A stretch of 64,000 nucleotides of DNA, taken from NCBI RefSeq assembly GCF_030684315.1, contig NC_081387.1:20270678-20334677 (forward strand), in the 5' to 3' direction. The notes under the pieces are model-generated. The model did no database searches, was not told the origin of the DNA, and was given only the letters and a program-made list of their open reading frames with translations. Each line of letters opens with the position of its first letter. The stretch's first letter is position 1. The translations under genes were made by a program, and so were the position numbers. Shown here one piece after another: positions 20,288 through 51,292 of the stretch. This DNA is from Stegostoma tigrinum (lineage: Eukaryota).

Positions 20288-20415
20288 TCAAGACTCACTG
20301 AAATATGCGAGAGAAATTGTGATAATGATGCAGGCAGAAAACACAGCAAGTTTCAGTGTAATCAGAATCATCTGCCAAAGCAGAGACCTTCTGCTGCTGA
20401 CGAGTGGCTGTCTGC
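20288..20415 (-). CDS. Gene B stalk/transmembrane exon with intramembrane Lys
   Basis: Acceptor tttgttttccatag; in phase 1 it encodes RQPLVSSRRSLLWQMILITLKLAVFSACIIITISLAYF. An internal donor A|gtgagt at 20298 is an alternative to read-through SES*. Confidence 0.85.
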
Positions 20416-21647
20416 CTATGGAAAACAAAAAAAAATCAAATTCAGCACTTATTTTCCAAGTTTCATTGTTACAATTCAATGCAATGCTCACTCAGCTTGA
20501 CACCAATATCCTTACACATTCCATTATTCATTGGTCTTAAGCCCTCACATTTACTTTCGCTCTTGGCTATCAATAATGGATATTTCTCCAGCTCCAGACC
20601 CCCAGCGTCCCCCGGCCCCCACTACCAGCACTACTAGTCTCTTCTGGTGCGTTGGTAGAGTTTCTATCTTTTGGCTGAAAGAACTAGATTCAATGCCTAC
20701 CTGTCCCAGATGTGTGTCATGACATGTTCAAGTAAGTTAATTAAAGTCACTATAATGGCATTAGAAGTATATTTTTGTGGCATTTATCATTGAATATGTC
20801 GGCTGAGCTCCTGTTGCATTTTGTATAAAGCAGTTGCGTGCCTCATACCTTGCAAGTTTTCATTCACCTGTTTGAAGTCATGATGTGTAACAGTAAATTA
20901 TTCCATGAAATACAACAGTTTGCAAGGCAGCCACCCCATATATTGAGCTGAACTGAAAGCGTTTTCTGAAGTGAGATATGGGCCACGACAACAATTAATT
21001 CTCTTTGTCTATCTATCTGGATATCTAACTCATCCAGCTCGAAATCTATCAGGTCTTCCTAATTTTAGACCCATCATGCATTCGTCCAACACATTCATTA
21101 TTGCTCTCATTCCCTTCGAGTAAACTTACATTTAACTGTTAACCTTGTTCCTGGTCCAAACTCCTCCTCAAAGGACAATATTACCTGACAGTAATACATG
21201 CCCGAATCATCTTGTTTCAGATTCGTAATCGTGATGGAAGCATTTCGATTGGTTCTGAAAGAGAGCCTGTCTACCTGGATTATCCTACCCAAGAATTTTT
21301 CAGACTTATTGGCTACTTTGGTATCTACTGTTCCATTTTTAATGTCTTTGTGCCACGAGAAAGCTCCAACCAGTTGATCATGAGGTGAATTATAAGTGCA
21401 GAGAAAGTGAGCTGTTTCTCCCTCTGTAGCTTCAATGTAGAGAGGTTCTTGATGCACTTGGAATTTACTTGCGTCTGTGGCTGTAAGGTAAATTTCAATA
21501 GCTAAGATGTGGTATTATTTTTTATTTTATCATATGCTTCTGCAGCTACTTAAATTTGCTCTTCCATACAGTAACTACATGTAGAAAGAAAATGAACAAC
21601 TCACTCAACAATAGTATCGAAGCCCAGAGTAGTCTAATGGGGTTCAT
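20288..21647 (-). CDS. NCR3: Gene B: NKp30/NCR3-like activating-type single-V receptor. Exons 21647-21605 (leader), 21480-21130 (V), 20415-20288 (stalk/TM); 173 aa if the TM exon reads through to its TGA
   Basis: Phase-1 GT-AG joins give MNPIRLLWASILLLTTDASKFQVHQEP...FLCTYN...GAFSWHK...DDSGMYYCQVILSFEEEFGPGTRLTVKCRQPLVSSRRSLLWQMILITLKLAVFSACIIITISLAYFSES*. The V domain aligns by eye with human NKp30, and the TM has a basic residue as NKp30 does. Family-level call; one-to-one orthology not proven. Confidence 0.8.
21130..21480 (-). CDS. Gene B Ig V-set exon with germline-joined J-like strand
   Basis: Canonical C..W..DSGxYYC and FGPGTRLTV; acceptor ttacag, donor T|gtaagt; 351 nt, phase 1-1. Confidence 0.95.
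21605..21647 (-). CDS. Gene B leader exon (MNPIRLLWASILLL)
   Basis: ATG at 21647, hydrophobic core, strong donor A|gtgagt, phase 1, 124-nt intron to the V exon acceptor (ccttacag). Confidence 0.85.
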
Positions 21648-22019
21648 TGCTTCTCAGTGATCTAGAAATTACAAAAGTATTTTGAAAATCCTACATTCAA
21701 ATCGTGATATTTAATGGGAAATTCAAAGAACAGTGTTGAAAAAATAAAGCTCTCCAATGATACCGACATACTTCCTATCTCTACATTGACACCTTCTTAT
21801 GTTCTTAAGAGCACCTTGATACCAAACCAGTAAAATTCCCTTACGTTCCTAATTCTGAAGAAGTTTGTCAGCATGTTAAGTATCCTACTAGCAAGAATGT
21901 TAAAACTTGTTTCATATGCAGAATACAACCATGTTTGCTCCTGTGATTGTTTAATTTGAAACTAAGGTTTTAGAAGGAATCTCCGAGGAATACGTTCAAT
22001 AAAACAATCATGATGAACC

Positions 22020-22318
22020 CATGGTTCCGTGGTTAGCACTGCTGCCTCGCCGCATCAGGAATCCAGGTTTGACTCCACCCCAGGGCGACTGTCTGTGTGC
22101 AGTTTTCACATTCTCCCCAAGCGTATGTGGGTTTCCTCTGGGTGCCCTGTTTTCCTCTCACAGTCCAAAGATCCACAGTGCAGGTTAGGTGGATTAGCTG
22201 TGGGAAATGCAGGCTTACAGGGAAGGGTAAGGGGAGATGAGTCTGGTTGGGGTGCACTTTGGAGCATTGGTGTGTGTATGTTGGACTGAATAGCCTGTTT
22301 CTACACTATAGAGATTCT
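22020..22318 (+). mobile_element. HE1-type (V-SINE) tRNA-derived SINE
   Basis: gtggttagcactgctgcctc...ctgtctgtgtg.agtt...gtgggtttcctc...cagtccaaagat; CR1-like tail. Confidence 0.85.
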
Positions 22319-22663
22319 GTTCTAAATAATTAAACCACTGCAGTTAATGGTTCATCATTCTAATAAGTAGGTTTGTAATAATTTGCTGAAGTGGCAAATA
22401 ACTAATTAAGTGTACATGCTCAATTGCATTTAGAAGCAGTTCAATGAATCAAGTGTTTCGATTGGGTACTAGAAAGAAGACGAACAATGATTTTCTCCCT
22501 TAAAGTGCCACTGTATAAAATCATAGATAACAGAAGGAGGTCAGTTAGCCAATGGAGCATGGCCTATTCCTACCATCAATTTTACTCCTCAGCTACAGTA
22601 TAAACTACTCTCACAGTTACCTAAACCATGGTTTAACCTGAACCAAAATATCCTTTGATATCA

Positions 22664-22823
22664 GAGATAATGGGAACTGCAGATGCTGGAGAATTCCAAG
22701 ATAATAAAATGTGAGGCTGGATGAACACAGCAGGTCTGATGAAGGGTCTAGGCCCGAAACGTCAGCTTTTGTGCTCCTGAGATGCTGCTTGGCCTGCTGT
22801 GTTCATCCAGCCTCACATTTTAT
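22664..22823. mobile_element. 160-bp Penelope pLTR-derived hairpin insertion with 15-bp target-site duplication
   Basis: tatcctttgatatca at 22649-22663 and 22824-22838; 35-bp perfect inverted repeat 22700-22734 / 22793-22827. Confidence 0.9.
22736..22766 (+). ncRNA. Minimal type I hammerhead ribozyme motif (Penelope-associated)
   Basis: CTGATGA - stem II (gggtc tag gccc) - GAAAC GTC; PLE pLTRs are known to carry minimal hammerheads. Activity untested. Confidence 0.7.
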
Positions 22824-25800
22824 TATCCTTTGATATCATTTACTACATTTTCATGTTAGGTGCCATCAAGGGTTGTTTGAGAGACCAGATGAAGACAAAG
22901 ACCTCACCTATGTTTTTTTAAAAATAACTTTGATATCATTGTTTAGAAAGCAAAAGTTGAGGTTTATTTCGAAGGAGTTCAAAAGATGCTCACTCAATTC
23001 ATCCCTGGGATGAAGGTATTGTTTTATGATGACGCATAGAAGTGGCTATGCCTATACCCAATGGAAATTGGAAGAATGGGAAGTCATATTATCAAAATAT
23101 GTAAGGCTTGTTGGGACCGAATAGGGTGACTAATTGGGAGGATACCACTTGTGGAGGACTTTAATAATAGGGCACATGGTTTACAGTTAAGAGGTTTCCT
23201 TATTCCTTTAGGTAATGAAGACATTGCTATCCGGGTCAATATTTATTTACCACTCTTAATTGCCATTGAGAAGATGGTTGTCTTCTTGAACTGCTGCATC
23301 CCTAGGAGATTCACAAGTCTGCTAGAGATTGAGTTCCCAGATTTTAACCAAGCAACAGTGAAAGAACAGCAATTTAGTTCCAAGTCAAGATAGTGTGTGA
23401 ATTGGAGGGGAAATAATGGCTACCCATGTATCTACTTCCATTGTCTAACTCAGCATAAAGGCATCAGGGTTTGGAAGGTGCTATTGAAGGAGCCTAGGTG
23501 ACTGACTACAGTGCATCTGGTAGAGGGCAAAGACATCTGCCACTATGCACTGATAGTGAACAAAGTGTGAGTTCAAAGTTCTGAGGAAGGGTCGCCAGGT
23601 CCGAAACATTAACACTGCTTTTTCTTCACAGATGCTACCAGGCCTACTGAGCTTTTCCAGCAACTTCTCTTTTTGTACGTTCAAGGTAGTGGATGAGTGT
23701 ATCAATCAATTGGGCTTTATCTAAAATGCTGGGGAACATATTCTCTCGCAAACTTGTTCAGAGTGGAATAATTTTCCCTGGAATGCAATGGGTACTTAGA
23801 TTTATTCAAGGTTGAAGTAGTAGATTTTTAGTCAAAGGTTATAATGTGCTCACAGAAAAGTGGAAGCCAGACTTCAACAAGATCAGCCATGATGCTAAAG
23901 ATGCTTCTGCTCCTAAGGCTACTGCTCCTATGTCCCTCTAATAGAACTACTCATCAGCCTGTTCGTCACTCCTTTTGCCTCAGATTATTCAGAAAGTTTG
24001 ATCAGGCGTGGTATTTCATTTCTGAACCAAAGTTGACTCTATTAAATAATTAGGAATGTATAACTGATCCTCACACTTGCCACTGATAATTGCTTCTATT
24101 ATCTTATTTAGAATGAATGAATAGTTGATGCATAATTAATGTATAGGCTCCTCCCCTGTGCCCACCACCGCCCACCTAACGATTTTCAGTCCTTTGTCGA
24201 TTTTCTGCTTCCACACTTGCAGCACTCATTTACGAAAGAATACATTTTCTCTCTGTGGATTTTCCTAAGTCTACTTAGCCCATCTAGAACGCCTATTGCA
24301 TACGTAATAAAATTTATTTTTATGTTTGAGGTAACTTTCCCTGGAGTGAATTTGCCACTCTGAAAATAAATGAAATAATATTGAAATATCCACTGGGATA
24401 TTGCATAATAATTTTTTCACCTATTGTTTCCGTAGAACATGATTTGTTTTAAAATGGATATGTTTCTTATAACGTTCATTTATCATGCAGTTTAATGTTT
24501 AAAAATACATTAACTTAATAATAGGAATTCCCGCCTAAGCAAACTTTTACCAGACTAACTCAACTGAACATAACTCACCACACTTACTTACATTTTGAAA
24601 AGTCGGAAGTAGAATAGGTAACTTTCTGCCTCAATTGTTTTCACTTATACCAACCATATCAGTTGAGATTTGAGACATGTAAATAATTACTGAACGATCA
24701 CGAACAAAATGGAATCCAACGCTGCAAAGGTATTAATAACATATAACTTCAATGGATACCTTGTCCGGAATGTTCTGTTTTCACTCCTCCGTTCTCTCTG
24801 CGTCCATTCCACCTTTGAACTATTACAGTGCAATTGTTGCCTTTGGATCACTTTCAAACCAATCACCTTCAGTGGAGTCAAATCAAAAGCTACAGAAAGT
24901 GGATGCAGTAGTCCTACAGGGAAATGTGAATCGCCTTTGTCAGTTGTTTGTAGAGCTGCAGGTTGTGGAGGCTGGGAGAAGCTTAGAAATGACTAGAACA
25001 ACATGAAATGTGGATCTGCATTTCGTGAAAACTAGCATGCAAATTATTCAACTGACAAATCATTGACGGGAATCTCTGACCTGAGAGTATGTATCACGAT
25101 GGGGAAGTTCCATATTTTGTTAAAGTACTGTGGTTAACTTTAAAAAGCTGGTTTTATTATTTAAAGAAAGATGTGTCTCCAGTTATGGGGAATGCGGTGG
25201 GCAAAGACGAGTCTAATATTTCCCCACACTGACAATGTGTACAAGTGCTAAAGGAAAATTGGTTTAAGTGCTTTCACATCTTTTGACACTAACTGGTATT
25301 AAAGCCCACTGTATTCGCTGCTGACAATGTAGTCTCCTCCATATTGGGGGAATGAGTGCAGAATGGAAGACCACATTGTAGAGCACATAGGTCCTGCCTG
25401 CTTCCAGTTCAGCACATCACCGTGTTCCCTGGCCATCATCTCCGTCTCGGACTTGTTGCGGTGCTCCAGCAAAGCTCAGCACAATCTGGAAGAAAAGCAC
25501 CCCATTTTCAGATTGCAACCTTCAGGATTCCTCATCAAGTTCAATAACTTTATTGTCTAAGCACTTTCTCCCACGTCCTTATCCCAACACCACACACCAT
25601 AACGTACGATTACATGGGCTGCTACCACAAACAATCTACTGTCATCTACTAATGGTTCCCATTAGCAGCTAGTCATTCTCCCAAGTTGACCTTCACCCAT
25701 TCCTTTGGCTGTCCAACCATCTTCTCTCTTCGTATCTCTACTTATTATCTACTCTTTTCCCGTTGCCCACTCTTTCCTTAGCACATATACCTACCTGCAT

Positions 25801-26621
25801 TTGCTGGTGTAATGGAGGCTACACATCAACCAATTCTCTGATATTAAAATGAGGTGTGAGGTGGATAAGCTGCTTTGATAATGTTAGGAGATGTGGTGGT
25901 GAAGTATGGTCTACTGGATTTGGGTGGGAGGGTGCGGAGTGGTGGGAGCTGCAGTGAACATTAATAATGAGCTCTTATCCCATGATTGGAGCTGGGGGTT
26001 TTAAATTCACTTTACAAATTTGGAATTGCAGAAATCTAACAATTATGTCCGTTGCACTGTATCAGTTGCACAGCAAAACTGATATGGTCCCCTAACAGTT
26101 GCAGCAAGATAGTTAATTCTTCAGTGTCCTCAGTAAAGGTTCATCAAGTGCAACCAGTGCTGGCCTTGTCCAAATCCCATAAAAGGATAATGAAGGTCAA
26201 TCTTTGAAATTGTGCTGAATTCTTTTTTGGTTCATCTGAACTAACTGATGGTGCTTCATTCCGAAGATGGCACATTTAACATTGCATCATACTGCAGCAT
26301 GAGCATCAGACAAGATTATATTCTCCAGTTGCTGGAGTGGAACTTTGACTCACAAACTTGTGATGCTGTAGAGCGATGACTGTGGACTGAGGCAGCACAA
26401 TAATTGTAGCGCAATTTGAATATAGGCAAATATCCATTTCTGAAGTTAAGAATGAGGCAAGTGAAAGTGAAGCATTCTATTGCTGGCAACAGGGGTGTTT
26501 TCTGAACTGGAAGGCTTGCAATTGGCCGTTCTTTCCAGACACATATATTTTAAAAGGCAGTAAAACAGTGGCAAAGAATAACACTAAATTTGTAGATTGG
26601 CAGAGTATTAAAATCCAGCAA

Positions 26622-26975
26622 TGTAAGGCAATGACCTATTGATATTATCGCAGGACGGTCAATCCAGAGACCCAGGTAATGTTCTGGGGACCCTGATTCG
26701 AATCCTTGCAAAATAGATTGTGGCATTTGAATGCAATAAAACACCTGGAATTAAGAGTACGATGATGACTATGAAACTGTTGTTGATTGTCTGAAAAATC
26801 CATTTGGTTCACTAACGGGCTTGAGGTAAGGAAGCTGCCGTCCTTAACTGGTCTGGCCTAGATGTGACTCCAGATCCACAGCAATGTGGCTGACTCTTAA
26901 CTGCCTTCTGGGCAATTAGGAAGAGGCAATAAATGTTGGTGAGGCCAATAACATTCTCATCCCATGAATGAATTT
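26622..26975 (+). mobile_element. Second tRNA-derived SINE family (other copies about 1945-2220 +, 9044-9305 +, 10415-10680 +, 14128-14345 -)
   Basis: Shared ggttcactaa..tcc...ctggtctggcc...gtgactccaga.ccacagcaatgtgg.tgactcttaactgcc core and tRNA B-box-like head. Confidence 0.8.
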
Positions 26976-27354
26976 TTAAAAAATGACAAAATAGCGAAAG
27001 TAGAAATTACAAGATATGCAAAAATAAGTTTATGTATAATGGCCAGAAGTTAAAGGCTGAGAAGGGAGGAATGATATAAACATATGAAATAGGAGAAGAG
27101 GTAGGTCACTGGGCCTCTCAAGCCTTTTCCACCATTCAATAAGACTTTTCTGATTACTCCACATCTCCATATAATCCATAAACATTCATTCCTTTGCTGA
27201 GCAACATCTGTTTTAAAGATAGTCAAAATCGCTGTTCATTGACAATGAAAGGCAAACGATCGAAAGACCCTGTGTGACAAAATGAATTTTCCTTATCTTT
27301 GTCTTAAGTGAGCGACCTCTCTTTTCTGTAAACGACAATTTCTGATTTTAGACC

Positions 27355-27666
27355 CATAGAATCTCTTTAGTGCAGAAGTGGCCATTTGGCCCATCGAATC
27401 AGCACCAATCTTCGGAGGTGTATCGCACCTAATCTGATCTAACCCCCACTCTGTCTTCAAAACATATCATTCACCATGGCTTTCCCACTTAACCTGCACA
27501 TCCTTAGGCACTATTGGTAATTCGGCATGCCCCATCCACCTAATACACTTTTAGATTATAGGAGGAAACTAGAGTACCCGTAGGACTTTCACGCAGAAAT
27601 GGGGAGAAATTTTTAAAAAGAGGTCGCTGATGCTGTGAAGTTAGCAGTGCTAACCACTCAGCCGCC
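27355..27666 (-). mobile_element. HE1-type SINE
   Basis: Reverse-complement similarity to 22020-22318. Confidence 0.75.
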
Positions 27667-28279
27667 GATTGGCTTTAGATCGTATCACAGCTGTTTTAAA
27701 TGCACCCTGTCAGGATCCATCATTATATGTTTTAACCAAGTTGCCCCTTACTCTTCTAAGCCCATTGGATACAAGCCTTGACTTCCCAAATTTTCCTCGT
27801 AAGACAACCAACTCAGTTCAAGTATTAGTATAAGAACCCTTCTCTGCACTGTTTTCACCACGCCTGCATCAATCCTTACAATTCTGTGTACAATACTCCG
27901 GATATGGTTTCATTAATGTCTTGTGAAACTGAAATATAATCTCCTTTCTTCTGCATTTAACTGCCCTTGTAATAGAAATGTTACGCTCTTCCTGAACTTC
28001 CTAATTATGACAATGGGGAACCAGGAAATCGCAGATATCTTTAAAAAAGTCATGAAATGTTTTTAAGCTAAAACATCTTTTTAAGAAAGAGATTCGTTGA
28101 CTCGTGAGTAAGGAATGTAATTCATATCAGTAGAGAAAACATAATGGAAAAAGAACCAATAATCTCGTGAAATCTTCGAATTCTGAAAGAGGTCAAAATA
28201 AGAGATAAAATGGTTTTGACCTTCCAAAATTCCATTATTTCTGTAACGATTATACTGAATAGGAAGAGGGTAAATGCAA

Positions 28280-29190
28280 GATCATAATTCAAGAAAGGAG
28301 AAAGAGATAAAATGTGGACTGACACCAGCTATTGGTTTAATAATTATTATTAAGGAGTGGTTAACAATATCTTTGTCAAAATAAATCAGTTGGTGTTGGC
28401 ATGTATCTTATGGAAATTAAATCTTACCTGGTCATTTTCTTAGCTATTTTGTGAAGACACTACCAATAGCGTAAATAAAGGGACATTAGTCAGTGAGAGA
28501 AACTGCAAATTTCCAAAGCTCATTCCATAAAGCACAGCGTATAAATCTATTACACAGTTTAAATGTTCATGGGGTGGGAGGCACGTATTTATGTAAGCAA
28601 GGGTAGGTTAATGGGCGGGTAGTACAAAACAGGCAGAAATGCGACATATTCTGACAGCAACGTTCTATTAGAGCAGAGCATCAATGTCAGTATGAGGGCT
28701 TTTGGAATTTTCAGTCCAAAATAAATGACTTAGATGAAGAGACGGAAAGAAATAGCTTTCTGATGTTAAAGATAATTGGGAATCCAAGTTGCAAGGAAGA
28801 AGCAAAGAGATGAGACGACATAAGAAAGTGCCTTGTGGATAAGTGACAGTCTGTAGATTATTTAGAAACTATTTAATGAAAGGACAGCATGCATGGTCGG
28901 TAAATTTATTGATTACGCAAAGATAGGGGAGCTGGTAATTTGTCAAGAAGAGATAAAGAGCCTGCAAAGGGAATTGCAGTGGACAATAATTTGACAGATG
29001 CAACACAATGTTAGGAAACATGATTTTTTAATCTGACAAAAGAGGCAATTACTTAAATGAAGAGATTGCAAGAATATTTGGGTGCCCTGGTACACAAGTC
29101 ACATAACTTGGCATGCAAGTACAACAATAGATTACAGAAGGAAATTGAATATTATTACAAGGTTATTACAAGAATATAGAATTTGAAAAT
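28280..29190 (+). mobile_element. Highly decayed CR1 RT fragment(s)
   Basis: Residual similarity to CR1 RT 3' half (SKFxxxxKIG-like, lgvlvh-like segments). Confidence 0.5.
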
Positions 29191-29609: not shown

Positions 29610-29895
29610 TGATTATGCTCCTGTCCAACCTCTTCCAAAAGATGCAGGAGCTTGAAAGCATTTGCCAACAGGTTTAAGGCCAGCTTCTTCCTTGCTGTTA
29701 TTAGACTGCTCAATGGGCCTTTCTAATTTCAAATAATGTTGATATTGTTACTGTTCATTTTGCTTTGCAACTGGAACCTTGTTCTTTCTGAGCACCCTTT
29801 AATCTGTTTGTACTTGTTTGCTATGACTGCCTGTACTGTTCACAAAACAAAACTTTGCATTGTACTTAGGTGCATGCGACAATGACAAATCAAAT
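29610..29895 (+). mobile_element. Rex1/Babar LINE 3' end
   Basis: Encodes RCRSLKAFANRFKASFFLAVIRLLN, followed by a ...catgcgacaatgacaaatcaaat tail. Confidence 0.75.
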
Positions 29896-32144: not shown

Positions 32145-32429
32145 CTACAAGCACACTGCTGCATACACGATCTGCTCGCCCTTCGTTCCGGCTGTCGGTG
32201 GGGTACTGAACCGAACCCCAGCCTCGCTCTGACCCTGTTGTGGTGAGGCCGAGTACACTATCGACACTTCATTACTTTTTGGAATTGGCGCCGACCCTCT
32301 CTTTGCTGGGTTTTCTGTCTGCGCGCTCAACCACTTTGTCTCGCTCACAGCCTGATCTGGATGACGGTGGATGTTTGAGCGGCTGATATTCAACTTCGTA
32401 TAAATTGTGGCATTGGACAAGTCTTCATC
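32145..32429 (-). CDS. Gene A terminal cytoplasmic exon with ITSM/ITIM-like motifs
   Basis: ttttcag acceptor, phase 0: DEDLSNATIYTKL...SIVYSAS...EQIVYAAVCL*. Confidence 0.85.
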   Translation of the reverse strand, partial: DEDLSNATIYTKLNISRSNIHRHPDQAVSETKWLSAQTENPAKRGSAPIPKSNEVSIVYSASPQQGQSEAGVRFSTPPTAGTKGEQIVYAAVCL

Positions 32430-35400
32430 CTGAAAATAACCAGATCATTTGTTACAATATTTGTAAATAACGGACGGCAGATTCTCTAGGTGAGAAAATA
32501 TATAACTAGCTACTACAATAGTGCTGATATATTTCCTAGCCTTTTGCTGTGGGTTTCGAATAAATGCTTTCTTCTTCGTTATTGTATTGGGCATCTTGCA
32601 CTTCACGACCCATAACACCGCGCAAACTGGACAGAATTATACCAGTGTTTGTGAAATATCTGCTTTGATATTATATACCACCGTGTCATGTGCTAAAAAA
32701 ATTTCCCTGACCTTATGCAACTGCAAAGGATTTTTTTCTCGGCTGTCGCTGGTAACATTTTTAAAGCATTTTTACATCAGAAACAACCCTCCGTTTTCGA
32801 TGTCACAACAGCCAGTGGGTAATGGAAATTTTGCATTCGTTGCGGGAATGAGCAAAAAATTGACCATGAACCCACTTGCTTTGCATTCCGGGCGCAAGAT
32901 GGGAGTTTCATCTCACAAACGATTACAGGAAAGATAGACTGACAATGAGTTTGCGCACTACTCGCTCACACTCTAGACCTGTACTTGGTCTAAGTCCACA
33001 GCACTCAAGTGACAAAGCCAACAGAGTTTCCACTTTAATCACTTCAAAGCAATCATGGCCTGTGCGCACTGTCGGGAGGCACTGTCATTTAGTAACAACT
33101 GAAGATAAAATGGTGAAGCAGAGCATGAGACGTTAACGTAGAGCATTGAACAGTACCGCTCGGGAAGAGGCCCTTCAGACCACAATGTTGAGCCGAACAT
33201 GACGCCAAATTAAACTAATCCCATCTGCCTGCCTTGGTCTATGTCGCTTCATTTCTTGCATATCCATATGCTTATCTAAAAGTCCCTTAAACGCGCCGAT
33301 CGTGTCTGCCTCCACCACCACCCCGACAACGCTTTCCAGGCTCTTAACATTTTCTGTGTTAGAAAAAAAAACTTGCCCTTCACATATACTTTGAACTTTC
33401 GCCTTCTCACTTTACGAGCATGCTCCTTAGTATTAGATATTTCAACTTTGGGTAAAAGATTCTGACTGTCAACCCTACATATGAATCCCTTAATTTTATA
33501 GACTTCAATTAAGTCGCCCTTCAGCGCCCGCCACACCCCCCCCCCCCCCCGTTCTCGAGAAATTAACCCGGGTTTTCCTAGCCTCTCCTTATAGCTCATA
33601 CCCTCTAATCCAGGCAGCATCCTGGTAAACCTCTTCTGCACCCTCTCCCAAAGCCTCGGCATCCTTCCTGTAATGTAGCAACCAGAATTGAACGCAGTAC
33701 TTCAAGTGTGGCCCAACTAAAGCCTTTGAAAGAAGCAAAAGACATCCTGACTCCGGCACTCAATTAATCGACCACTAAAGGCCTGCATGCCACATGCCTT
33801 CCTTACCACCCCGTTTACTTGCTTGGCCATTTTCAGGGGTCGAGTAATCGAATTCGCGTGACGCAATGTACAATTTTAAAAAAAACTAGCTTGCAGTGAT
33901 GTCTCTAGTGTAAGGAAAGTTTGTAAGAATAAAAACAAAATGATCAGCAGCTGAATGCAAGGAGCAAGAGTCTTTTCTTCCGAAGGTATTAAAAAAATTG
34001 AGAGCAGGGATATTGGGCAGTCTCTAGCGGTTCGGAAGCAGAATTTATAAGAGCGATGCGTGGCTGGATGCACTCTAGATTTCATATCTAGAAACGTTGG
34101 GACGCCGGAGACAGTGGTCAGCTTGTCTTGTTAATAAGAAGTCGCAATGGATTTGTGCTAGAAAGTAAAATTACTACCTTCCTCTAGGATAAGGACAATA
34201 GAAACATAGGATCGTAGAATCCCCACATGGAAGCAGGTCTTTCGGCAAATCGAGCCTGCACCGACCTTCCCAACAGCGTCCCACCCCACGCAGACCCACC
34301 CCACTATATGCCTGCAGCCCGCATTTCCAATGCTCGATTCACATAGCCTGCAAATCCCTGGACACTTTGGGCAACGTAGCGCGGCCAATATACCTAACCG
34401 GCACAGTTTTGGATGTGGGAGGAAACCGGGCCACCAGGAGGAAATCTTCGCAGACAAACCAGATTTCCATTCTCCAGGCTTCGGTTATATTAAGCATTCC
34501 AGGATAAAATTTCACTTGTAGCCCGGCTTCGACGTTAGTGTTTCTCATTTTCATCTTCATCTGATCTGCTCACCGAACCCCCCCCCCCCCCCCCCCACCA
34601 CATACCCCGCCATCCCATCCTCACCCCCATAGAAAACGTGACACCAGTACAAACATTTGGATACAAACTGCCGACTCATTTAGTCACCATTTTGCCTGTA
34701 GAATAAACTGCACTTCAAATTGACATATCTTGCTGAATACTTGCTTCCTGCTCATATTCAAAGCTTGGAGTCAAGCACTTAATATTCCTTATTATTACTT
34801 GCCATCCTCATCTTTTGTAGCATAATGATCACGTATAATGTGAAACTTTCCCCTCATAAGCCTTTCTCAAAGATCATCACCTAAAATTGCCATCAATCTG
34901 AGTACAAAGCAAAAGCCTTAATGGGAATGGAGTACATACCTCATTTGCAACTTGGTCTCCAGTTCCGTTATCTATAAAAGTTATTTTTAATTGGTTAGAT
35001 ACCTTAAAGCAGGAACAAAATTAACAATTGCATAAATGCAGTGCTACCATCAAGGCATTAGGAAGAAAGATCTAGAACTTCTGCATTTCTTTACATGTTG
35101 ACTGCAGCAGTTCGAGAGGCAGCTTAACACCTCCTTCTGGGGGCACCTAGAGATAGTCAATAAATACTGGCCCAGCTACTGACATCTGAGGCCCACCCGT
35201 GAATAAATTGAAAAAAAAATCTTGGAGTTTGAATGTCAAAAAAGTGGCTCATGAGTGCTGGTCTCTTTAGTGAAGTATTTTCCTTTAAAAAAGAGACAAA
35301 GCTTACAAGAGGCTCTTCTGGAATAGTGATTGCCTAGCACTGTGATATCTTGAAAAGTGTCCATTTACAGAAGACATCTTCAAATGCACGGGGGTGGATA

Positions 35401-38400: not shown

Positions 38401-41400
38401 CAACGAATCTTGCCTATTATTGTTTATTATCATGCAAGGTGGTAGGAGTAAAAGTGTGAGATAACCTCTAATGAAAAATATTTAAAACTAGAAGGCAATA
38501 ATGAAACTTACCAACTTTGAAGTTGAGCATTTAAATACACTTTCAATATTCTACAATTTGAGCAATGATGCTTTTACTTTATGATACTTTACGAACATGG
38601 CACAAAAATGAGGAATGAATAGATGATGTAGTAATAATTTTTTGCATTTTTGTCTTTCTGATACATGGATAAGCATTATAATTTCCTAAAATCTTGGCTT
38701 TTACTATTCCTTTCTAGGGCTCTCCCCCTTGCTTTCCTTTCAAAAGTCTATGCTCGTCAACAAATAATTTGGCTAATTACGCCAACAGTTCAGAGAAAGT
38801 TTGAAAGTATGATCCCCAAAATATGCAGGTATACAAATCACCTCAAGCTGGATATCTTCTCTCTTGAGAAAAGAAGGTTGATACATAACCTGATTGGATT
38901 CTATTAAATTATGAAGGCTTTGTTACAATAGATACAGGGGAAATTTTCCTCTTACGGGCAATAGCTTAGATAGAAGCCACCAATACAAGATCACTATCAA
39001 GTATTTCCATGGGAAATTGAGAAGAAACTTCTTCCCATAAACTATGACGAGAACGTGAACTCATTACTACAGTATGAAGAGACTAACAGAGCCATAATTA
39101 AAAGTTAACTGAAATTCACATAAGGACATATAAATAGTTTACTAGATTTATTAGTTGAGACGATAATAGGGAGAGGGCCAAGAAGAGTAGAAACACTGTG
39201 CCGCAACTCATTCTACATTATTTTGTATTTGAATTCAGTAATTACCTGGAGGTCTGCTACTGTGCAGTGTAGAAATTATTTTGATTAAGATTATAGCGAA
39301 CAGCACCAGGACCACCACTGAAAATATCAGAAGATTGGTGTTCCACTGAATTGGAGATTGTGTTTCTTCAGAATCGATGTGAGCTGCAAATAGAGGAGAG
39401 AAAAACTATTTGTTTTGTTATGCCTTTGCATGTCTCTTTGTGCTTTTGTTAGTGGCTATATATTGGTTTCATGCTTAATTTAAAAGCAGCAAATAAGTAG
39501 CAATGTTGCAGTATGGTGCAGTGAGGTACTTAGTTGTTGAGCAGTAGAGCAAATAAAACTATTTCTCTTTTTATAACCCTCTTATAAGCTCCTCTGTGCT
39601 TTTCATTGCTGTTATTCTTAGTCATATGTTTTAGTTAAGGTAAACAAGACCGTTACAAAGATCATTTGTACAAAATAAGCACAAATAATATCAGCAGGCA
39701 AAGCCACAATAAAGAGTCAGTTGGGTGACTGCAAGCCTGTAGATGCCAGCAGACGTGGTTTAGTGGACGTTGGGGTAGAAGGTAGAGGAGGAGCAGGTGT
39801 GGATTGTAGCTACTGGGGGAAATGAAGTGTTGTACACTGTTCTGTGTATCTCTTCCTTTATCTGACTTGTAATCTATTTCAGAACAAAATGCTCATCATA
39901 TAAACTGCTTACATTCCATTAATTTGAACTTCTTAGGAAAGCTATATTGGTTAAAAATGGATTCAAAAATGCTGCTAATCTGAATTTAACATACAATAAT
40001 TCATTCTAAATTAAATATCAATAACTATGTACCACCCATCCTCCGCTCGATTAAATGATCAATTAGACTCAGACAAATTTATAATTAATTTACCCACTCA
40101 GCTTAGGGCATCCTTATGCTACTTTGTGAAGATGATCGAGATAGCTGACGGTGTTGAAGCCGTCTTAAGTTGCAAAACATGTAGAACAAACCAGTTATTA
40201 TTCAAATGTGATTATAACAACCAGCACCAGGACCACCATTGAAAAGACAAGCAGATTTGGAGATGGCGTTTCTCCAGAATCAATATGAGCTGAAAATATG
40301 GGGGAGAAAAACCATCCATTTCATTATGTCTTTCCTTTTCTCTTTGTGTTTTTAGTGGTTGCTATATTGGTTTCACACTTCATTTAAAAGCTGCAAATGA
40401 GTAACAAAGTTGCAGTACAACATTGCAGAGCACCTGGACAGTGAGTGGATGAAACGGAAAAAAACTAAGTATTTTTTCATCATCCTCATCTGTGATTTTC
40501 ATTGCTGTTGTTGTTAGTCATATATTTCAATTAAGATAAACAAGGATATATAGAAGATCATTTGTACAAAATAAGCAAGAGTATGATCAGCCAACAAAGC
40601 CACAATAAAGAGTCAGTTGGGTGATTGCAAGCTTGTGGATACCAGTAGAGGTGGTGGACGTTGACATGGAGAAGGGGAGGAACAGGTGTAGATTGTAGTA
40701 ACCGGGGAGGTGAAATGTTGGACACTGTTCTGTGTATCACTCCTTTCTCTCAGGTAATTTATTTTAGAATAAAAATTCTTCTCAAATAATAACTTATTTT
40801 CTGTCAATTTAATCTTCTCAGCAATGCCATACAGCTTCAAAATGGATTTAAAAATGCTGCAGATCTGAATCTAATCCATAATTATTCATCATAAATTAAA
40901 TATCAGTAACTATGCACTACCCATCCGCCACCTGATTCAGTAATCAATTAGAATAAGACAGTTTTGCAACTAGTTTACCCACTGAAACTTAGAACCTCTT
41001 CATGCTACTTTGCAAAGATAATACCAATATATGACGGCATTGAAGCTATCATAAATTGCATATCATGTAGAAGAAACTAGCCAGCTATTAGTCAATTATG
41101 ATTGCATGTGTGATGGCTAAAGCAAGTGAATTTCTTTAAAAGAAACAGTTTCCTGGAAAGAAAATGGAAAAGAAAGGATATTTTGATCTGATGATCCCTT
41201 CTTTATAATTGTCTAATCACAGGACAATAGTTGCCAAATGTGTACCGATGCAATTCAAACATATTATGCAATTCAGTTCAAATAAAATAAAGGATCCTGC
41301 TTCTGCTAGGTTTTCATCAGGTCATTCGCTATTCTGACTACTATTGTCAAGGTGCTGCACCAACACTAGCATTTATTGCCAAGTTAGGATGCAAGGGTGG

Positions 41401-44400: not shown

Positions 44401-47400
44401 GCGTACGGCACAATTTATAGAAATGTCTCCAGATTCAAGATTTTTCAGTTACCTGGATAGATTGCAGAAAGTATGCTTATTCTTTTTTAGAGAGCGAAAA
44501 GTTTAACAACTGATTAGATGGAAGTGGCCAAAATTACTAAGCGTTTAGAGGAGTAGATAGATGAAGTACTCCCAACTACTGTTGGGCCTGAACTTGTGGG
44601 AACAAATTGAATGTGAGCACAAATGACCACCAGGACAAGAAGCACAGAAAAATGAACACTGGTGAGGATCTGAAATGCACTACCTGAGAGTGTTATTGTG
44701 ATGGATATGATCGGGAAAGCCTGAACCCTTCCAAAGAACTGGATAAGTAGCTAAATTTTTTTTTAAAAGTATGGCTACAAGATAAAGGTCAGGGAATGGG
44801 AGTCGAAGAGTTGCCCTTGCAACGAACCGTCACGTGCACAATAAGCTCTTACTGACTTGTGTTACAATTCATTGGAAATAGTTCCTACTACTCTGAAGCG
44901 AGAGCAAAATTGGATGTGGTGCAATAACAGCATTGATTCAGATATTGTCAGTTTATCTATTTTGCAGGAAACATCCAGGCGGGAATAAAGATGAATTTTA
45001 ACTAAGGTTTGAATAGAATATTGAACATAGAACTGCACAGCACAGGAATGGGCCCTTTAGCCCACAATGTTGCGACGAACATGATGCAAAATTAAACTAA
45101 TCCCTTCGACCGCCCTTGGACCCAATCCCTCCATTTCTTGCATAGTCATGTGCTTTTCTAAAAGATGTTTAAACGACCCTATCATGTCAGCCTTCACCAC
45201 CATCCTGGCAGTTCATTCCACACTCCTCCTGGTCTGTGTTAAAAAAATTCCACTCACGTCTCATTTGAACAATCCCCCCCCCCCCCCCCCCCCCCCACCC
45301 ACCCTCACCTTAAATGCATGCCCCTTAGTTTTAGATATTTCAATTCTGGGACGAAAAGATTCTGACTGTCAACCGTTTCTATGTATCTCGTAACTTTATA
45401 AAATTCTATCAAGTCTCCCCTCAGACACCACCGAACCAGGGAAAACAACACAAGTTTTTTCATCCTCCCCTTTTGGTTCATACACTCTAATTCAGGCAGC
45501 ATCCTGGTAAGTGTCTTCTGCACCCTCTTAAAAGCCTCTATTACTTTCCTGTAATGTGGCGATCAGAAATGAATGCAGTACCCTAAGTATGGCCTAACCG
45601 AAGTCTTATAAAGCTGCAACATGACATTCTGATTCTTGTATTCAATTCCCCGACTACGAAACTCAAGTCTGCAGTATGCCTTCTTTACCACCTTATCTAT
45701 CTGTGTGGCTACTTTCAGAGAGCTATTGACTGGAACCACAAGATCCCTCTGAACATCAATGCTGTTCAATGCCCAACCATTAACTGTATACTTTTCCTTA
45801 AAATCTGATCTCCCAAAATGCAGCATCTCACACTTTCAAGGCTTAAAGTCCATTTGCCATTGCTCCGCCAATATCTGTAACTGATCTACATCCCGCTGTA
45901 TTCTTTGACAACCTTCTGCATTATCCACAACCCCACTGATCTTTGTACGACCTATGAACTTATTATTTTGCCCATCTATATTTTCATCCTATATATATAT
46001 ATAAAACAGCAGAAGTCCCAGGGCAGATCATTGTGGAAATGGGCAAGCTATTCTGAATCTGCATTGCCAAGTTACCTTTGATCCCAGACATCTTGATCCC
46101 TGTATGAGCCTATCATGAGGGACCTTGTCGAAAGCCTTACTAAAATCTGTGTTGGCAACATCCACTGCTCTACCCTCAGCGGTCACCCTTGTCACCTCCT
46201 CTAGAAATTCAATCAAGTTAGTAAGACATGACTTGCCCTGCTGACTGTCCCTAATTAGGCCATGCTTTGTCAAATGTGTGGAAATCCTAAACCTAAGAAT
46301 TCTCTTCACTAGATCCCTAACCACTGAAGTGAGACTCACTGATCTTTAGTTTCCTGCATTTTCCCTATTCCCTTTCTTGAATAGAAGAACAACTTGCCAA
46401 TCCCCAGGACCTCTCCAGTGGCTAATGAGGATGCAAAGGTCTTGGTGAAGGTCCCAACAATTTCCTGTCTTGCTTATCTCAATAACTTGGCACCCCTGGA
46501 GAGTTATCCACCGGAAGGCACTTCAAGAGACCCAACACTTCTTTCTTGATCTCAAAATTAGTATGTTCCACACAAATCTTACTATCCTCCATATCCTTCT
46601 CCTGGGTGACACAAAGTACTCATTTAGAATCTTACCCACATCTTCTGCCTTGAACAATAAGTTCCTTCTGTTATCTTTGAGTAGTCCTCCGTTTTTAATG
46701 TATAGAATGACTTGAGATTCTCTTTAACCCTCTTCTTGCCCTCCTAATTCCCTGCTTGAGCTCTTTCTTGCTATCTTTATATTTCTCATTGACCTTGTCC
46801 GATCTTGGCTTCCAAAAAATTACCTATGCTTCTTTTCTTTTCTCTTTGACTACATTCATTGCCTCCCTCGTTGCCCAAGGTCTCCTCACCTTGCCATTCT
46901 TCTCCTTCCATCTTACTGGAAAAAGCTGAGGCCTCATCAGCTGGTCTTTGAACAGTTCCCATATGTCAAATGTGAACTGTCCCAATAGCAGCTCCTCCTA
47001 ATTAACAACTGCTAGCATCCTACTGATGCAATTTGCCATCCCCCAATTCAGAATGATCCCACAAGGTCCTGATTTATCCTCATTCATAGCTATCTTTAAA
47101 CTTAAAGAGTTGTGGCCACTGCTTCCAAAATGCTCTCTCACTGGAAGGTCAGTCACTTGGCCAGGCTCATTAGACCGTACAAGATCCAGGAGGCCTCCCA
47201 TCTCCAAATGGGCTGTCTATATACCGTTCCAAGAAACTTTCTTGGATGCATTTGACAGTTTCTGCCCTGTCCAAGCCTCTTACTCAAATGGAGTCCCTGT
47301 CAATATTAGTAAAGTTAAAATCACCCACTATGACAACTCTGTCTTTAAAGCATCTTCCCATAATCTGCCTGCACATTTGTTCCTCAATGACTCGTCAGCA

Positions 47401-50400
47401 GTTGTGGGGACATAGCGATGGCACCCATCTTATTTTGGAGCTCCACCAATATTGGTTCAATGAACGAGCTCTCCAGCATGTCCTCTCTGAGTGCAGACTT
47501 AACATTCTTCCTGATTAGTAATGAGCCGCCTTCGCCTCTTTTACATTCTTCTTTAGTTGGTCTAAAACAACAAAACCCTGGCACATTGAGCAGCCAATCC
47601 TGTCCTTCTTTCAACCAATTCATTTAAATGGCCTCAACAACATAGTTCCATGTATTGATCCAGGCTCGAACCTTGGAGGCAATAAGGACGGTAGATGACG
47701 GAAGCCAGTGTCAATAGATGTAAAGCTGGAAAGGCACTGCAGGTCAGACACCATCCAAGGAATAGAAAACTTAACAATCTGGGCTGAAACCCTTTGTCAG
47801 GACTGGCGACGGGGTGGGGAGCCCAGAAGTAAATAGAGGGAAGTGTCTGGTCTGGGCGAAGGTTAGGTGGGATGGTAATAGTTGGGCACAGGTAGGAGGT
47901 TATTATGATTAGTCAGTTTGAAGAGTGGAGTGGATAGGTGAGTAGGAAAATAGGCAGGTGAGGTTAGGTCAGGGAAGCGAGAGGGCTGGACATGGGGCTG
48001 GGAATGGATGGTTTTTGAGGCTGGTGAAGTCAGCATTGAGGCCATTGGGCAATAAGCTCCAAAGGTGAAATATCAGATGTTTTCCTCCAGCATACAATTG
48101 TGCTCACTCTGACAGTGGAGTAGGCCAAGGATGGGCATGTCACCAGGTAAGTGGGAGGGGGAATTAAAATGGATGGTAACGGGAAGGTTAGATTGGTTGG
48201 TGTTGACAGTGCACAGATGCTCCATGAACTGGTCCGCGAGCCTGCGTCTGGTTTCCCCAATACAGATGAGACCACTTTGGGGGCAATGGATACGTTAGAT
48301 CAGGTTGGAAGAAGTGCAGGTGAATCTCTGCTAGATCTGGAAGAATTGTTTGGGACCTTGTACGGAGATGAGAGGGCAAGTGTACAGGCAGGTGTTGCAT
48401 CTTTTGCATTTGGCAGGGAAAGGTACCGGGTGTGGTCGAGAATTTGGTAGGAGTGGGTGTAGAGCTGACGAGAGAGTTCTGGAGTGAACAGTCCCTGTGG
48501 AAAGTGACAAGGATGGGGAAGGAAATATATTTTTGGTGGTGGGGTCTGCTTGTAGGTGGCAGATGCTGAATTGGACTCAGAGGTTGATGGGGGGGTATGT
48601 GAAGACTAAGGGGACTCTATCCTTGTTGTTGGGGAGAGGGGTTTGAGGGTAGAAGGGCAAGAAAGGGCGGAGGTATGGTTGATGACATCCTTAATTACAG
48701 AAGATGGTAAATACTGGATCCTAATGTAGGTTAATATCTGGGATGCCCTGGAGTAAAATGCCCCATCCTGGGAGCAGATGCTGCAGAGGCAGAGGAATTG
48801 AGAGTATAGGATAACATTTATGCAGAAGGGCAGGTGAGAGATGGTGTACTCGAGGTAGTTGGGCGAGTCAGTGGATTTGAAATGGGTGTCATTGGTGAGT
48901 CAGTTTCCAGAGATGCAGATAGAGAGGTCCCGGAAATGGATGGAGGTGTCAGAAATGATCCAGATGATTTTGAGGGCAGTGTGCAAGGTATTGATGAAGT
49001 GGATGATCTGCTTGAGCTCTTTGTGGGACCAGGAGGCAGTACTGAAGTAGTCATTAGTATAACAGAGAAAGAAGTGAAGGATGGTTCTGGTGTAGGTGTG
49101 GCAGAGGGACTGTTCCGTGAATCCTACAAAGAGGCAGGCATACCTCAGGCCCTTGCAGTTAACCATGGTTTGTAGGAATTGAGAGGAATCAAAGGAGAAA
49201 TTGTTGTGAGTGAGGACCAGTTCAGCTAAGTGAATGAGAGTGCCAGTGGAGAGCAGGAAGTAGAGGGTCTTTAGACCCTCCATATGGGGAATACAGGTGT
49301 AAAGGTGCTGTATGTCCATGGTGAACATGAGATGCTGAGGGCCAGGCAATTGAAAGTTTCGGAAAAGATGGAGGGCGTGGCTTCTGTTACAAATGTAGGT
49401 AGGAAGTTCCTGGACTAAAAGGTAAATAACAGAGTCGCGGTAGGAGATGAGCTGAGTGGGGCAGGTGCAGGCAGAGAGAATGGGTTGACCGGGGCATTTG
49501 GTTTTATGACTTTTGTTTAGAAAAGAAGCTGTTTCTGATCCTGTTTGGGCATGTAGTACTCCCTCATCAGCTTTGCACACCCCACCAACTTCTCCACCAC
49601 ACCAGGTACCTTTCCCTGCAAACGCAAGAGGTCCAATACCTGCCCCTTCTTATCTCTGTCGAAGTACGCATACAATTCTTTTAGATCCAGCAGAGATTCA
49701 CCTGCACTTCGTCTAAACTGACCTAGTGTATCCATTGCTCCCAATGCGATCTCCTCGATATTGGGGAGACCAAACATTGACTTGGGAGCCAACTTACAGA
49801 GTATCTATGCTCTGCACACACCAACCAATCCCATCTTCTGATTCCCGTCCATTTTAATTCCCCCTCCCACTCTCCTGGAAACAAGTCCATCCCTGGCCTC
49901 CTCTACCGTCAGAGTGAAGCCAAATGTAAACTGGAGGAACAACACGCGATATTTCGTTTTGGGAGCTTACAGCCCAGAGGCCTCAATATTGACTCCACCA
50001 GCTTCAAAATGTCTCCATCCCCAGCCCTATCCTCTGTCCAGCCCTCCCCTTCCTCCACACATCCCTGACCTGGCCTAACCTGCCTGTCCTCCTATTCACC
50101 TATCCTCTCAGCCCTTCCCAGTGACCAGTCACAATAACCTCCTCCTTGCGTCCACCCATCAACATCCCACCTACCCTTCTCCCAGCCCTAACTCCTCCAT
50201 TTATTTACTTCTGGGCTCCCCTCCCCCTCGGTCCGAATCGTTGACTTTCCTGCTCCTCGGATTCTGACTGACCTGCCGTGCTTTTTAAGCCTCACATTAA
50301 TTGACTCAGGCTCTACGTTCAACTGCCGTCCTCCTTGCGTTGAAATGAACACAGCTCAGTCCATTAGTACCGTCGCGTTCATGTACCTGTCTCTGCCTGC

Positions 50401-51292
50401 TCTTTCTTTCTGATTTACTGGTTCCACTATGTACCTTCTTCTCATTCCCTGCACTTGCTGACCTGCTGCTTTGGCTCCCAGCCCCCTGCCACTCGAGTTT
50501 AAACCCTTCCAAGTAGCACCACCGCACCTCCCCGAGAGGCTACTGGCTCCCCTCTGGTTTAGCTGCAACCCATCCCTCTTCTACAGATTACGACCGTCCC
50601 GGAAGAGGTCCCAATGATCCAAAGGACGTGAAGCCTTCGCCCCTGCACCAGCTCCTGAGGCACGCATTCATCTACCTATTTCTTGCCTCAATAGCACCTA
50701 ACCCAGAGATTACTGCCCTCGAGGTCCTGCTTTTCAGCCCCTCTCCTAAATCCCTGTACTCGCTCCGCAGCGCCTCATCCCTCTTTCTACCTATGTGGTT
50801 GGTACCAGTGTGCGCCACGACCTCTGGCTGTTCAAGCTTCCCAGTTTCCATTTATATATATTTTGGGGAGGTGATGGTTGGGGGACGGAGGGTGGTGAGA
50901 GAGTGGATCAATCTACAAAGTGAGAGTGATAAACGTACCATTTACTGTGACTCTTATGCCTTCTCCAGTCCCGCTCCCACCACGGATAACATGGACCTCG
51001 CAGTAATACGTTCCTGTATCGTTCAGTTTCGTCTCGGTTATTGATATCGACGCTATTTTCAATTCGAGGAAGGACGATGCATCGGTGTGCAGGACGCGGC
51101 CGAAATATCCTGCGCAATTGTTGCAAACTTCAGAAGTCTTATAATCTTTGTACCACATGTAGGAACCTATCAGTTTGCTTTTTGAATGGGTGGTATCCAC
51201 ACTAAAATTGCAGTGTAGATTCAACGTGTCACCCTTGGTAACGTTAATCGAGACCGGAGTTTGGTTGACTGTGACTCTGGAGTCAGTGATTC
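32145..51292 (-). CDS. Gene A: NKp30-family single-V receptor with long tyrosine-motif (ITSM/ITIM-like) tail, inhibitory-type. Exons 51292-50939, 39383-39246, 34971-34940, 32429-32145; leader not resolved
   Basis: The four exons join in frame (phases 1,1,0) with GT-AG sites, giving about 269 aa plus leader: V, AHIDSEETQSPIQWNTN, TM LLIFSVVVLVLFAIILIKIISTL, tail with TIYTKL, IVYSAS, IVYAAV. Additional small exons in the long introns cannot be excluded. Confidence 0.75.
33140..33840 (-). mobile_element. CR1/HER1 3' fragment
   Basis: ERVQKRFTRMLPGLEGMSYKERL...LKGDLIEVYKI. Confidence 0.9.
34198..34455 (-). mobile_element. HE1-type SINE, 5'-truncated
   Basis: Reverse-complement similarity to the HE1 core and tail. 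Confidence 0.75.
34940..34971 (-). CDS. Gene A short cytoplasmic exon (DNGTGDQVANE)
   Basis: cttttatag acceptor, GAG|gtatgt donor; its 32 nt convert phase 1 to phase 0, exactly as needed to join the TM exon to the last exon. Confidence 0.7.
35340..37257 (+). mobile_element. CR1 RT-to-3' fragment, interrupted by a SINE at about 35476-35817
   Basis: LSKFAVDTKIG.VVDSEED, GDLIEVYKI, 3' tail ctgtgactctatgac. Confidence 0.88.
35476..35817 (-). mobile_element. HE1-type SINE inserted in CR1
   Basis: cctgcatatctttggactgtgggaggaatccggagcac...gaaacccac core. Confidence 0.85.
38076..38395 (+). mobile_element. HE1-type SINE
   Basis: cagtggttagcactgctacctcac...agggacccc head and HE1 core. Confidence 0.85.
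39246..39383 (-). CDS. Gene A stalk/transmembrane exon
   Basis: Acceptor ctctcctctatttgcag, donor CAG|gtaatt, 138 nt, phase 1-1, encodes a long hydrophobic helix. Confidence 0.85.
39289..41103. repeat. Diverged tandem duplication, units about 39289-40209 and 40210-41103
   Basis: Colinear similarity throughout (e.g. cagcaccaggaccacca, atcatttgtacaaaataagca, cacaataaagagtcagttgggtga, aaaatggatt.aaaaatgctgc); gatt at all three boundaries. Confidence 0.9.
40198..40289 (-). CDS. Gene A duplicated truncated TM exon; candidate alternative terminal exon with GPI-signal-like C-terminus
   Basis: Intact acceptor (atattttcag), phase 1, open frame AHIDSGETPSPNLLVFSMVVLVLVVIITFE*; paralogous to exon 39383-39246. 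Confidence 0.55.
44100..44830 (+). mobile_element. Decayed CR1 3' fragment
   Basis: Residual CR1 3' coding and tail sequence (tgaaatgcactacctgagagtg). Confidence 0.55.
45020..50840 (-). mobile_element. Near full-length degenerate CR1/HER1 LINE (ORF1 remnant, APE, RT, 3' end), split by the Penelope insertion
   Basis: KSCLTNLIEF, DFSKAFDKVPH, LQLYKTSVRPYL, HFGSSGHNSL, CVHFNAR and ORF1-like VVAHTGTN. Confidence 0.9.
47668..50306 (-). mobile_element. Degenerate Penelope-like element (RT on -, inverted 3' copy about 49510-50306 on +) inserted in a CR1
   Basis: ORF 48900-49580 RT motifs (FTMDIQHLYTCIPH, YACLFVG); caggctc duplicated at 47661-47667 and 50307-50313. Confidence 0.85.
50939..51292 (-). 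CDS. Gene A Ig V-set exon (NKp30-like)
   Basis: LNLHCNFS...IGSYMWYKD...ASISI...DTGTYYCEVHVIRGGSGTGEGIRVTV resembles human NKp30 YVCRVEVLGLGVGTGNGTRLVV; acceptor ttttacag, donor G|gtacgt; 354 nt, phase 1-1. Confidence 0.93.

Follow-up and report, generated by a model that had tools for sequence, protein, structure and literature searches.

The sequence analysed here is a 64,000-nt stretch of Stegostoma tigrinum without N runs (contig NC_081387.1, positions 20,270,678 to 20,334,677 of the forward strand), referred to below as the window and numbered from its first letter. It contains two intact genes resembling NCR3, the gene for NKp30, which we call A and B. Both lie on the minus strand, separated by 10.5 kb, and each encodes a single immunoglobulin-type variable (V) domain. 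The open reading frame (ORF) listing and a six-frame reading gave two V-set exons, both on that strand, and what genic content the window has falls between 20.3 and 53.1 kb of that strand, apart from two decayed V exons on the opposite one. Searches of the window by tblastn with all retrieved homologues gave no further intact exons of the family, and no other genes were found in the window, only retroelement debris. As set out below, the window is likely to be part of an elasmobranch NCR3 (NKp30)-family cluster evolving by birth and death, in which two intact genes carry divergent, old V lineages: A of a predicted inhibitory type, and B with a lysine in its transmembrane (TM) segment and no tail. 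The two are neighbours, and would not form a matched pair.

Exon structure of genes A and B

Gene A comprises five coding exons running from 53136 to 32145 on the minus strand, with a coding sequence of 852 nt that specifies 283 amino acids. Exon 1 (53094..53136) bears the start codon and the signal peptide MLSNRIIWLLLLYP, ends at a phase 1 donor (CCGA/GTAAGT) and was matched by tblastn to residues 1-14 of the Chiloscyllium protein XP_043533738.1 with 71% identity. Exon 2 (50939..51292), phase 1 at both ends, encodes V-A, a VJ-type V-set domain (Pfam V-set, 4.6e-10) that ends in GTGEGIRVTVN. The stalk and an uncharged TM segment, AHIDSEETQSPIQWNTNLLIFSVVVLVLFAIILIKIISTLHSSRPP, are contributed by exon 3 (39246..39383), again phase 1 in and out and 79% identical to residues 133-180 of XP_043533738.1. 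Exon 4 (34940..34971) is a cytoplasmic mini-exon of just 32 nt, reading D-NGTGDQVANE and passing from phase 1 to phase 0 (TTATAG/AT...GAG/GTATGT). It was found through homology, by tblastn of XP_043533738.1, which has NGTREQVANE at the matching position. The cytoplasmic tail and stop codon lie in exon 5 (32145..32429), with 58% identity to residues 202-294 of the same protein. The mini-exon (34971-34940) is needed in the gene because the tail is out of frame without it: the exon 3 donor (CCAG/GTAATT) is phase 1 and the exon 5 acceptor (CAG/GAT GAA) phase 0, a clash for which the direct join of 39246 to 32429 was rejected.

The resulting tail of about 110 residues has three tyrosine motifs. The membrane-proximal TIYTKL (32408-32391, minus strand) resembles an immunoreceptor tyrosine-based switch motif (ITSM), IVYSAS in the middle (32261-32244, minus strand) is degenerate, and IVYAAV (32171-32154, minus strand), six residues before the C-terminal end, is a canonical immunoreceptor tyrosine-based inhibitory motif (ITIM).

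Gene B has three coding exons, from 21647 to 20288 on the minus strand, and a coding sequence of 522 nt for 173 amino acids. Exon 1 (21605..21647), with the start codon and the signal peptide MNPIRLLWASILLL, ends at a phase 1 donor (TTGA/GTGAGT) and is 73% identical to residues 1-15 of the nurse-shark protein QTT61904.1. Exon 2 (21130..21480), phase 1 in and out, encodes V-B, a VJ-type V-set domain (Pfam V-set, 1.4e-17) ending in FGPGTRLTVK. Exon 3 (20288..20415) reads C-RQPLVSSRRSLLWQMILITLKLAVFSACIIITISLAYFSES and then stop, its final portion being WQMILITLKLAVFSACIIITISLAYFSES; it supplies the stalk and the TM segment and is 89% identical to residues 133-170 of QTT61904.1. The TM lysine, encoded by AAA at 20353-20351 (minus strand), lies in the outer third of the helix, and the protein ends directly past the TM segment with the three residues SES.

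All six introns of the two genes are bounded by GT..AG, their phases are compatible and all frames are open. These models bear out much of the initial annotation, namely two tandem, same-strand single-V genes (with Pfam V-set domains, canonical splice sites and matching phases), a TM lysine and practically no tail in gene B, and a tail of about 110 residues in gene A with TIYTKL, IVYAAV and the degenerate IVYSAS, all three located in exon 5. Its joins for gene A fared less well. The V, TM and tail exons exist, but the leader and the mini-exon had been overlooked, so that a direct join from 39246 to 32429, impossible by phase, was assumed. The end placed at 51292 also falls short, since the leader exon extends the gene to 53136.

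Relatives and family placement

The V-A exon was searched against 1.84 billion representative proteins, and two informative proteins were returned: Chiloscyllium LOC122541177 (XP_043533738.1, 294 aa), with 68% identity, and Heterodontus XP_067865303.1 (280 aa), with 56%, the name "NCR3-like" of the latter being automatic only. Mapping the Chiloscyllium protein onto the window by tblastn recovered all five parts of gene A, and in both proteins the V domain, TM segment, mini-exon and tail follow one another in the same order as in gene A. Since orthologous proteins of other species keep the same parts in the same order, the architectures of genes A and B represent more than chance. Protein searches gave no nurse-shark counterpart of gene A: the V-A exon was without a match in its length band and XP_043533738.1 matched only itself.

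An alignment of the A lineage, covering Chiloscyllium, Heterodontus and the rays Hemitrygon, Hypanus and Narcine, shows which parts of the cytoplasmic region are kept. Present throughout are the mini-exon peptide (D-x-x-T-G-x-Q-V-x-x) and the terminal (I/V/T)xYAxV. The 11 residues of the mini-exon are DKRTGTQVVSK in Heterodontus, with a counterpart in the ray homologues too. The IVYAAV of gene A fits the ITIM pattern [SIVL]xYxx[IVL], and five other elasmobranch proteins have IVYATV, TVYAAV, FVYAAV, VVYGAV and VTYAVV at the same position. The membrane-proximal YxxL(N) is generally present, but Heterodontus has lost the tyrosine, and the motif midway along the tail is degenerate, so that the terminal ITIM is the constrained element of the tail. 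It is on this conservation that the case for an ITIM in gene A rests, since a single ITIM-like match in a 110-residue tail would, by our estimate, arise by chance about once in five such tails. In the Chiloscyllium model the mini-exon peptide is followed by 12 additional residues, LCITEASRLKNL, that are found in neither the window, Heterodontus nor the rays, and that probably reflect either another choice of donor or an artefact of the model.

Gene B has closer relatives. V-B is 89% identical to nurse-shark QTT61904.1 (170 aa; natural cytotoxicity triggering receptor 3, NCR3) and 82% identical to Chiloscyllium plagiosum XP_043533736.1 (173 aa), whose end, ...YFCES, falls at the matching position. 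The lysine-bearing TM segment, of the form RSLxWQ..(L/V)KLxxF, is common to the nurse-shark and Chiloscyllium relatives, and in an alignment of seven shark and ray homologues the lysine is invariant. The Chiloscyllium counterpart (XP_043533736.1 / XP_043533737.1) carries the RefSeq symbol cd79b, yet that protein has no immunoreceptor tyrosine-based activation motif (ITAM) and ends just past the lysine TM segment. The symbol looks like a mislabel, and we rejected a CD79b identity for gene B, which has no cytoplasmic ITAM, ends three residues past the TM segment and has no credible ITAM-coding frame within the next 20 kb.

The end of gene B could also be read differently. Its last codons (TTC AGT GAG TCT TGA, 20302-20288) overlap a near-consensus donor, TTCA/GTGAGT, cut at 20299/20298, and nurse-shark QTT61904.1 stops exactly there, at the phenylalanine codon of ...AYF. 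If this donor joined the TM exon to at least one cytoplasmic exon further downstream, in the way that exon 3 of human NCR3 is joined to exon 4, gene B would not be tail-less and its signalling character would be undecided. Human NCR3 does have a separate cytoplasmic exon, alternatively spliced (PMC6514059), and the ray homologues that share the lysine TM segment have tails of 15-25 residues or longer. On the other hand, the Chiloscyllium RefSeq protein, represented by two transcript accessions, reads through to a stop in the same place (...YFCES), ATTAAA signals are positioned 240-270 nt past the stop codon, and a search of the 20 kb downstream of gene B for an ITAM, an ITIM or a homologous tail exon gave nothing credible, only chance-like candidates. 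We regard a tailed gene B as rather unlikely and retain the tail-less model. The Chiloscyllium counterpart would keep GTGAGT, judging from its protein end.

Several lines of evidence place both genes in the NKp30/NCR3-like V family, as had been proposed for them initially. Each has one V-set domain within a single phase 1 exon, closed by a germline-joined, J-like motif (GTGEGIRVTVN and FGPGTRLTVK, respectively). For comparison, NCR3 has been treated as a major histocompatibility complex (MHC)-linked, non-rearranging VJ gene (PMC10751288). By name, the relative of V-B with 89% identity is a designated NCR3 and that of V-A with 56% an automatically named NCR3-like protein. Against the Protein Data Bank (PDB), NKp30 was the top match of V-A (7e-9), with the next one weaker by four orders of magnitude (8e-5), and a profile of the A lineage gave 8e-17 for NKp30 and 3e-13 for the next single domain. 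With a profile of the B lineage NKp30 was the best single-domain chain, albeit by a small margin (2e-8 against 3e-7); multi-V antibody constructs outscore it through summed domains, and the canonical FGPGT motif of gene B attracts light-chain matches. NKp30 is, in sum, the closest solved single domain for both genes.

In a V tree of 94 rows, all retrieved with V-A, genes A and B both fall within the half holding hamster NCR3. In a tree of 26 rows, with the root placed at the clade of mammalian NCR3, gene A joins a ray clade and its orthologues from Chiloscyllium and Heterodontus (95/96), and B, on a long branch, joins its nurse-shark and Chiloscyllium relatives (97/99). The trees, which contain V-A-retrieved homologues only and no T-cell receptor, immunoglobulin, CD28 or NITR outgroups, place A and B in one retrieved family and do not amount to an exclusion of all other V families.

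Predicted wiring, the question of pairing, and turnover in the cluster

At the level of sequence, gene B shows the combination of basic TM residue and short tail, by virtue of its conserved lysine, and gene A does not, its TM core being uncharged and its tail bearing an ITIM. Gene A, with its signal peptide, germline-joined VJ domain, stalk, uncharged TM segment and tail of about 110 residues, would be of the inhibitory type: its terminal ITIM and membrane-proximal TxYxxL, when phosphorylated, would draw in SH2 phosphatases or adaptors, with a dampening effect on activation. Gene B, since it combines an invariant TM lysine with essentially no tail, would signal via an adaptor only, the lysine presumably engaging an ITAM adaptor with an acidic TM segment, such as FcRgamma, CD3zeta or DAP12, for both surface expression and signalling. 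The arginine of NKp30 needs CD3zeta or FcRgamma (PMC6514059).

The initial annotation went further, seeing in these neighbours a paired activating and inhibitory system, possibly reading B7H6-like ligands with opposite outputs. The adjacency, common strand and opposite signalling motifs (an ITIM tail in A, a TM lysine in B) stand; the matched pair does not. V-A and V-B are only 36% identical and hence far from the near-identical ectodomains of paired receptors; indeed they are no closer to one another than V-A is to hamster NKp30 (35%), the corresponding figure for V-B being 28%. In the trees they occupy separate, old and well-supported clades, each of which has orthologues of its own from other species. 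The reading of A and B as a true paired-receptor system built on the NKp30 scaffold, sharing a B7H6-like ligand and giving opposite signals in the manner of KIR2DL/2DS or paired NITRs, would draw support from the tandem arrangement, the opposite signalling architecture and the NKp30-like V domain of both genes. It would also draw support from the Chiloscyllium orthologues, whose adjacency is taken solely from consecutive RefSeq numbers (XP_043533736/7/8) on one contig. Against it stand the low V identity, the separate clades and the existence of a closer activating/inhibitory pair within the family: in Hemitrygon the lysine-TM and ITIM members form sister clades, and XP_072892294.1 and XP_072920858.1 are 64% identical in the V domain, which is what a pair would be expected to look like among NCR3-like proteins. 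Sharing of a ligand by A and B is accordingly improbable in our estimation. The two are neighbours with opposite predicted wiring and, given the 36% identity of their V domains, their ligands most likely differ.

The surroundings of the two genes carry traces of gene gain and decay. Within intron 2 of gene A, at 40207..40293 on the minus strand, tblastn revealed a truncated duplicate of the TM exon, reading AHIDSGETPSPNLLVFSMVVLVLVVIITFE and then stop. It has an intact phase 1 acceptor, a deletion of five codons and an in-frame stop right past the helix (...VVLVLVVIITFE and stop), with no tail, and belongs to a 0.9-kb tandem duplication (39348-40213 and 40254-41103; 75% identity over 883 bp by self-blastn). 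Splicing to it as an alternative final exon would leave the product of gene A with neither tail nor ITIM. On the plus strand, tblastn located the 3' half of an NCR3-like V exon at 3725..3909, a pseudogene fragment with no in-frame upstream half, and a B-like V exon pseudogene at 5108..5401 with stops and frameshifts. The best match of both decayed exons is a protein with two V domains. The V pseudogenes and the half-duplicated TM exon show gene turnover, that is birth and death, in the cluster.

Retroelement debris occupies introns and flanks. It was noted at 60929-63070 and 45305-46339 (both minus strand), at 33141-33750 and 45023-45632, at 47807-48480 and 49555-50230 (inverted), and at 55219-58842. 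Part of it is an ORF of 550 aa that bears RVT_1 and zf-RVT domains, and there are shorter reverse-transcriptase fragments as well. Several repeat copies, direct and inverted, are 75-90% identical.

Such surroundings raise the question of whether genes A and/or B are silent relics, or whether the scattered exons of gene A go unjoined in vivo. Gene A is stretched over 21 kb, its retroelement-filled introns of 12 kb, 4.3 kb and 2.5 kb containing reverse-transcriptase debris; the duplicated TM exon is a possible competitor in splicing, and pseudogenised V exons lie close by. Set against this are open frames, canonical splice sites and compatible phases throughout, an exon order that matches the Chiloscyllium and Heterodontus proteins with each exon conserved, and a 32-nt mini-exon that keeps its size and sequence back to rays. 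Neutral sequence would lose features such as the open frames, the splice sites and the conserved mini-exon. Relic or unjoined genes are, in our judgement, very improbable.

The signalling modules do not track V lineage: in sharks and rays, lysine-TM and ITIM-tail modules alike are joined to more than one V lineage. A lysine TM cassette, RSLRWQLLEIGVKLVIF, comparable to window positions 20291-20413 (minus strand), is found on A-lineage V domains in rays (Hemitrygon XP_072920818.1 and XP_072892294.1, Rhinoraja XP_078271940.1), and suggests module exchange between V lineages. In the V tree a single clade of all lysine-TM forms was rejected by the approximately unbiased (AU) test (lnL difference 48, p-AU 1.7e-5), the group tested having been picked after a first tree was seen; it is from this rejection that the mismatch of modules and V lineages follows. 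Exchange of modules and repeated loss are both compatible with this mismatch, as they are in other receptor families subject to birth and death. A bolder proposal is that, in elasmobranch NCR3-like genes, the lysine-TM cassette and the cassette of mini-exon plus ITIM tail are ancient, separately conserved modules, repeatedly swapped among divergent V lineages to give species-specific activating and inhibitory sets, with the half-duplicated TM exon at 40293-40207 providing in addition, in this shark, a tail-less, signalling-dead isoform of A. We put this forward tentatively, as a possibility that we ourselves doubt.

Some points weigh against the interpretation of the window as a birth-and-death NCR3-family cluster with an inhibitory-type A and a tail-less B. 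Besides the donor within the last codons of B and the nurse-shark protein stopping at it, the chance frequency of ITIM-like matches, the absence of outgroups from the trees and the late choice of the AU-test group, they concern the exon joins, for which the support consists of splice signals and of the mostly predicted proteins of other species. The only public runs containing this DNA number four and come from one study; because they cover 98% of a mostly intronic stretch they look genomic, and none is recorded as RNA. With these points taken into account, an NCR3-family cluster holding two intact genes of old and divergent V lineages is still the interpretation that we judge likely.

Comparison with known receptor systems

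NKp30 is among the very few natural killer (NK)-cell receptors traceable from sharks to humans, and its mammalian form only activates. The exon-level view given here indicates that a shark keeps an ITIM-tailed, predicted inhibitory member beside a lysine-TM member, and that the inhibitory tail module, including its mini-exon, is conserved in sharks and rays. It also provides concrete constructs for work with shark adaptors, phosphatases and B7H6-like ligands. The general picture is unchanged, as cartilaginous fish and amphibians have multigene NCR3 families, already known or annotated, with both wirings. The novelty implied for the locus by the initial annotation finds no support, since nurse-shark NCR3 genes have been deposited (MT914154-MT914161; PMC12227049), V-B being 89% identical to one of them, and ITIM-tailed NCR3-like proteins of Carcharodon, Heterodontus, Hemitrygon and a newt are already in RefSeq. 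With the shark family published and ITIM-tailed members listed, genes A and B are a sound improvement in annotation that adds two members to a known family, and no new kind of system.

The closest likeness is between gene B and the nurse-shark NCR3 family, in which QTT61904.1 shares the VJ-type single V domain (89%) and the lysine TM segment (89% across the TM exon). Gene A, by contrast, is without a counterpart there in protein searches. That family reportedly consists of eight highly divergent, MHC-linked subtypes, a divergence with which the 36% identity of A and B is in keeping. MHC linkage of NCR3 in sharks has been reported in the literature.

Mammalian NKp30 resembles both genes in its single VJ-like V domain, and among solved structures it is the nearest to them in sequence. 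With gene B it also shares a basic residue towards the outer side of the TM segment (arginine in mammals, lysine in B). Mammals, unlike this shark, have a single and solely activating gene, whereas gene A combines an uncharged TM segment with an ITIM tail, and V identity to hamster NKp30 is low for both genes.

Xenopus has MHC-linked V-type genes of the immunoglobulin superfamily (IgSF), XMIV or amphibian NKp30-like, and those with ITIMs date in the literature from 2006. Together with the RefSeq NCR3-like proteins of sharks, rays and newts (for example Carcharodon XP_041068169.1, Hemitrygon XP_072920818.1 and XP_072920858.1, and Lissotriton XP_078502137.1), these make up a multigene family of NKp30-like V genes, its members having cytoplasmic ITIMs in some cases and a basic TM residue in others. 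They differ in belonging to other species and lineages; the tail module of gene A is conserved across the elasmobranchs, the group that our alignment covered.

Lastly, the classical paired receptors (KIR2DL/2DS, LILRB/LILRA, SIRP, CD300 and the teleost NITRs) are likewise clustered IgSF genes, in which an ITIM tail is set against a basic TM residue with a short tail, and they too have undergone duplication, decay and module exchange. Where their paired ectodomains are near-identical, those of A and B share little more than a third of their residues.

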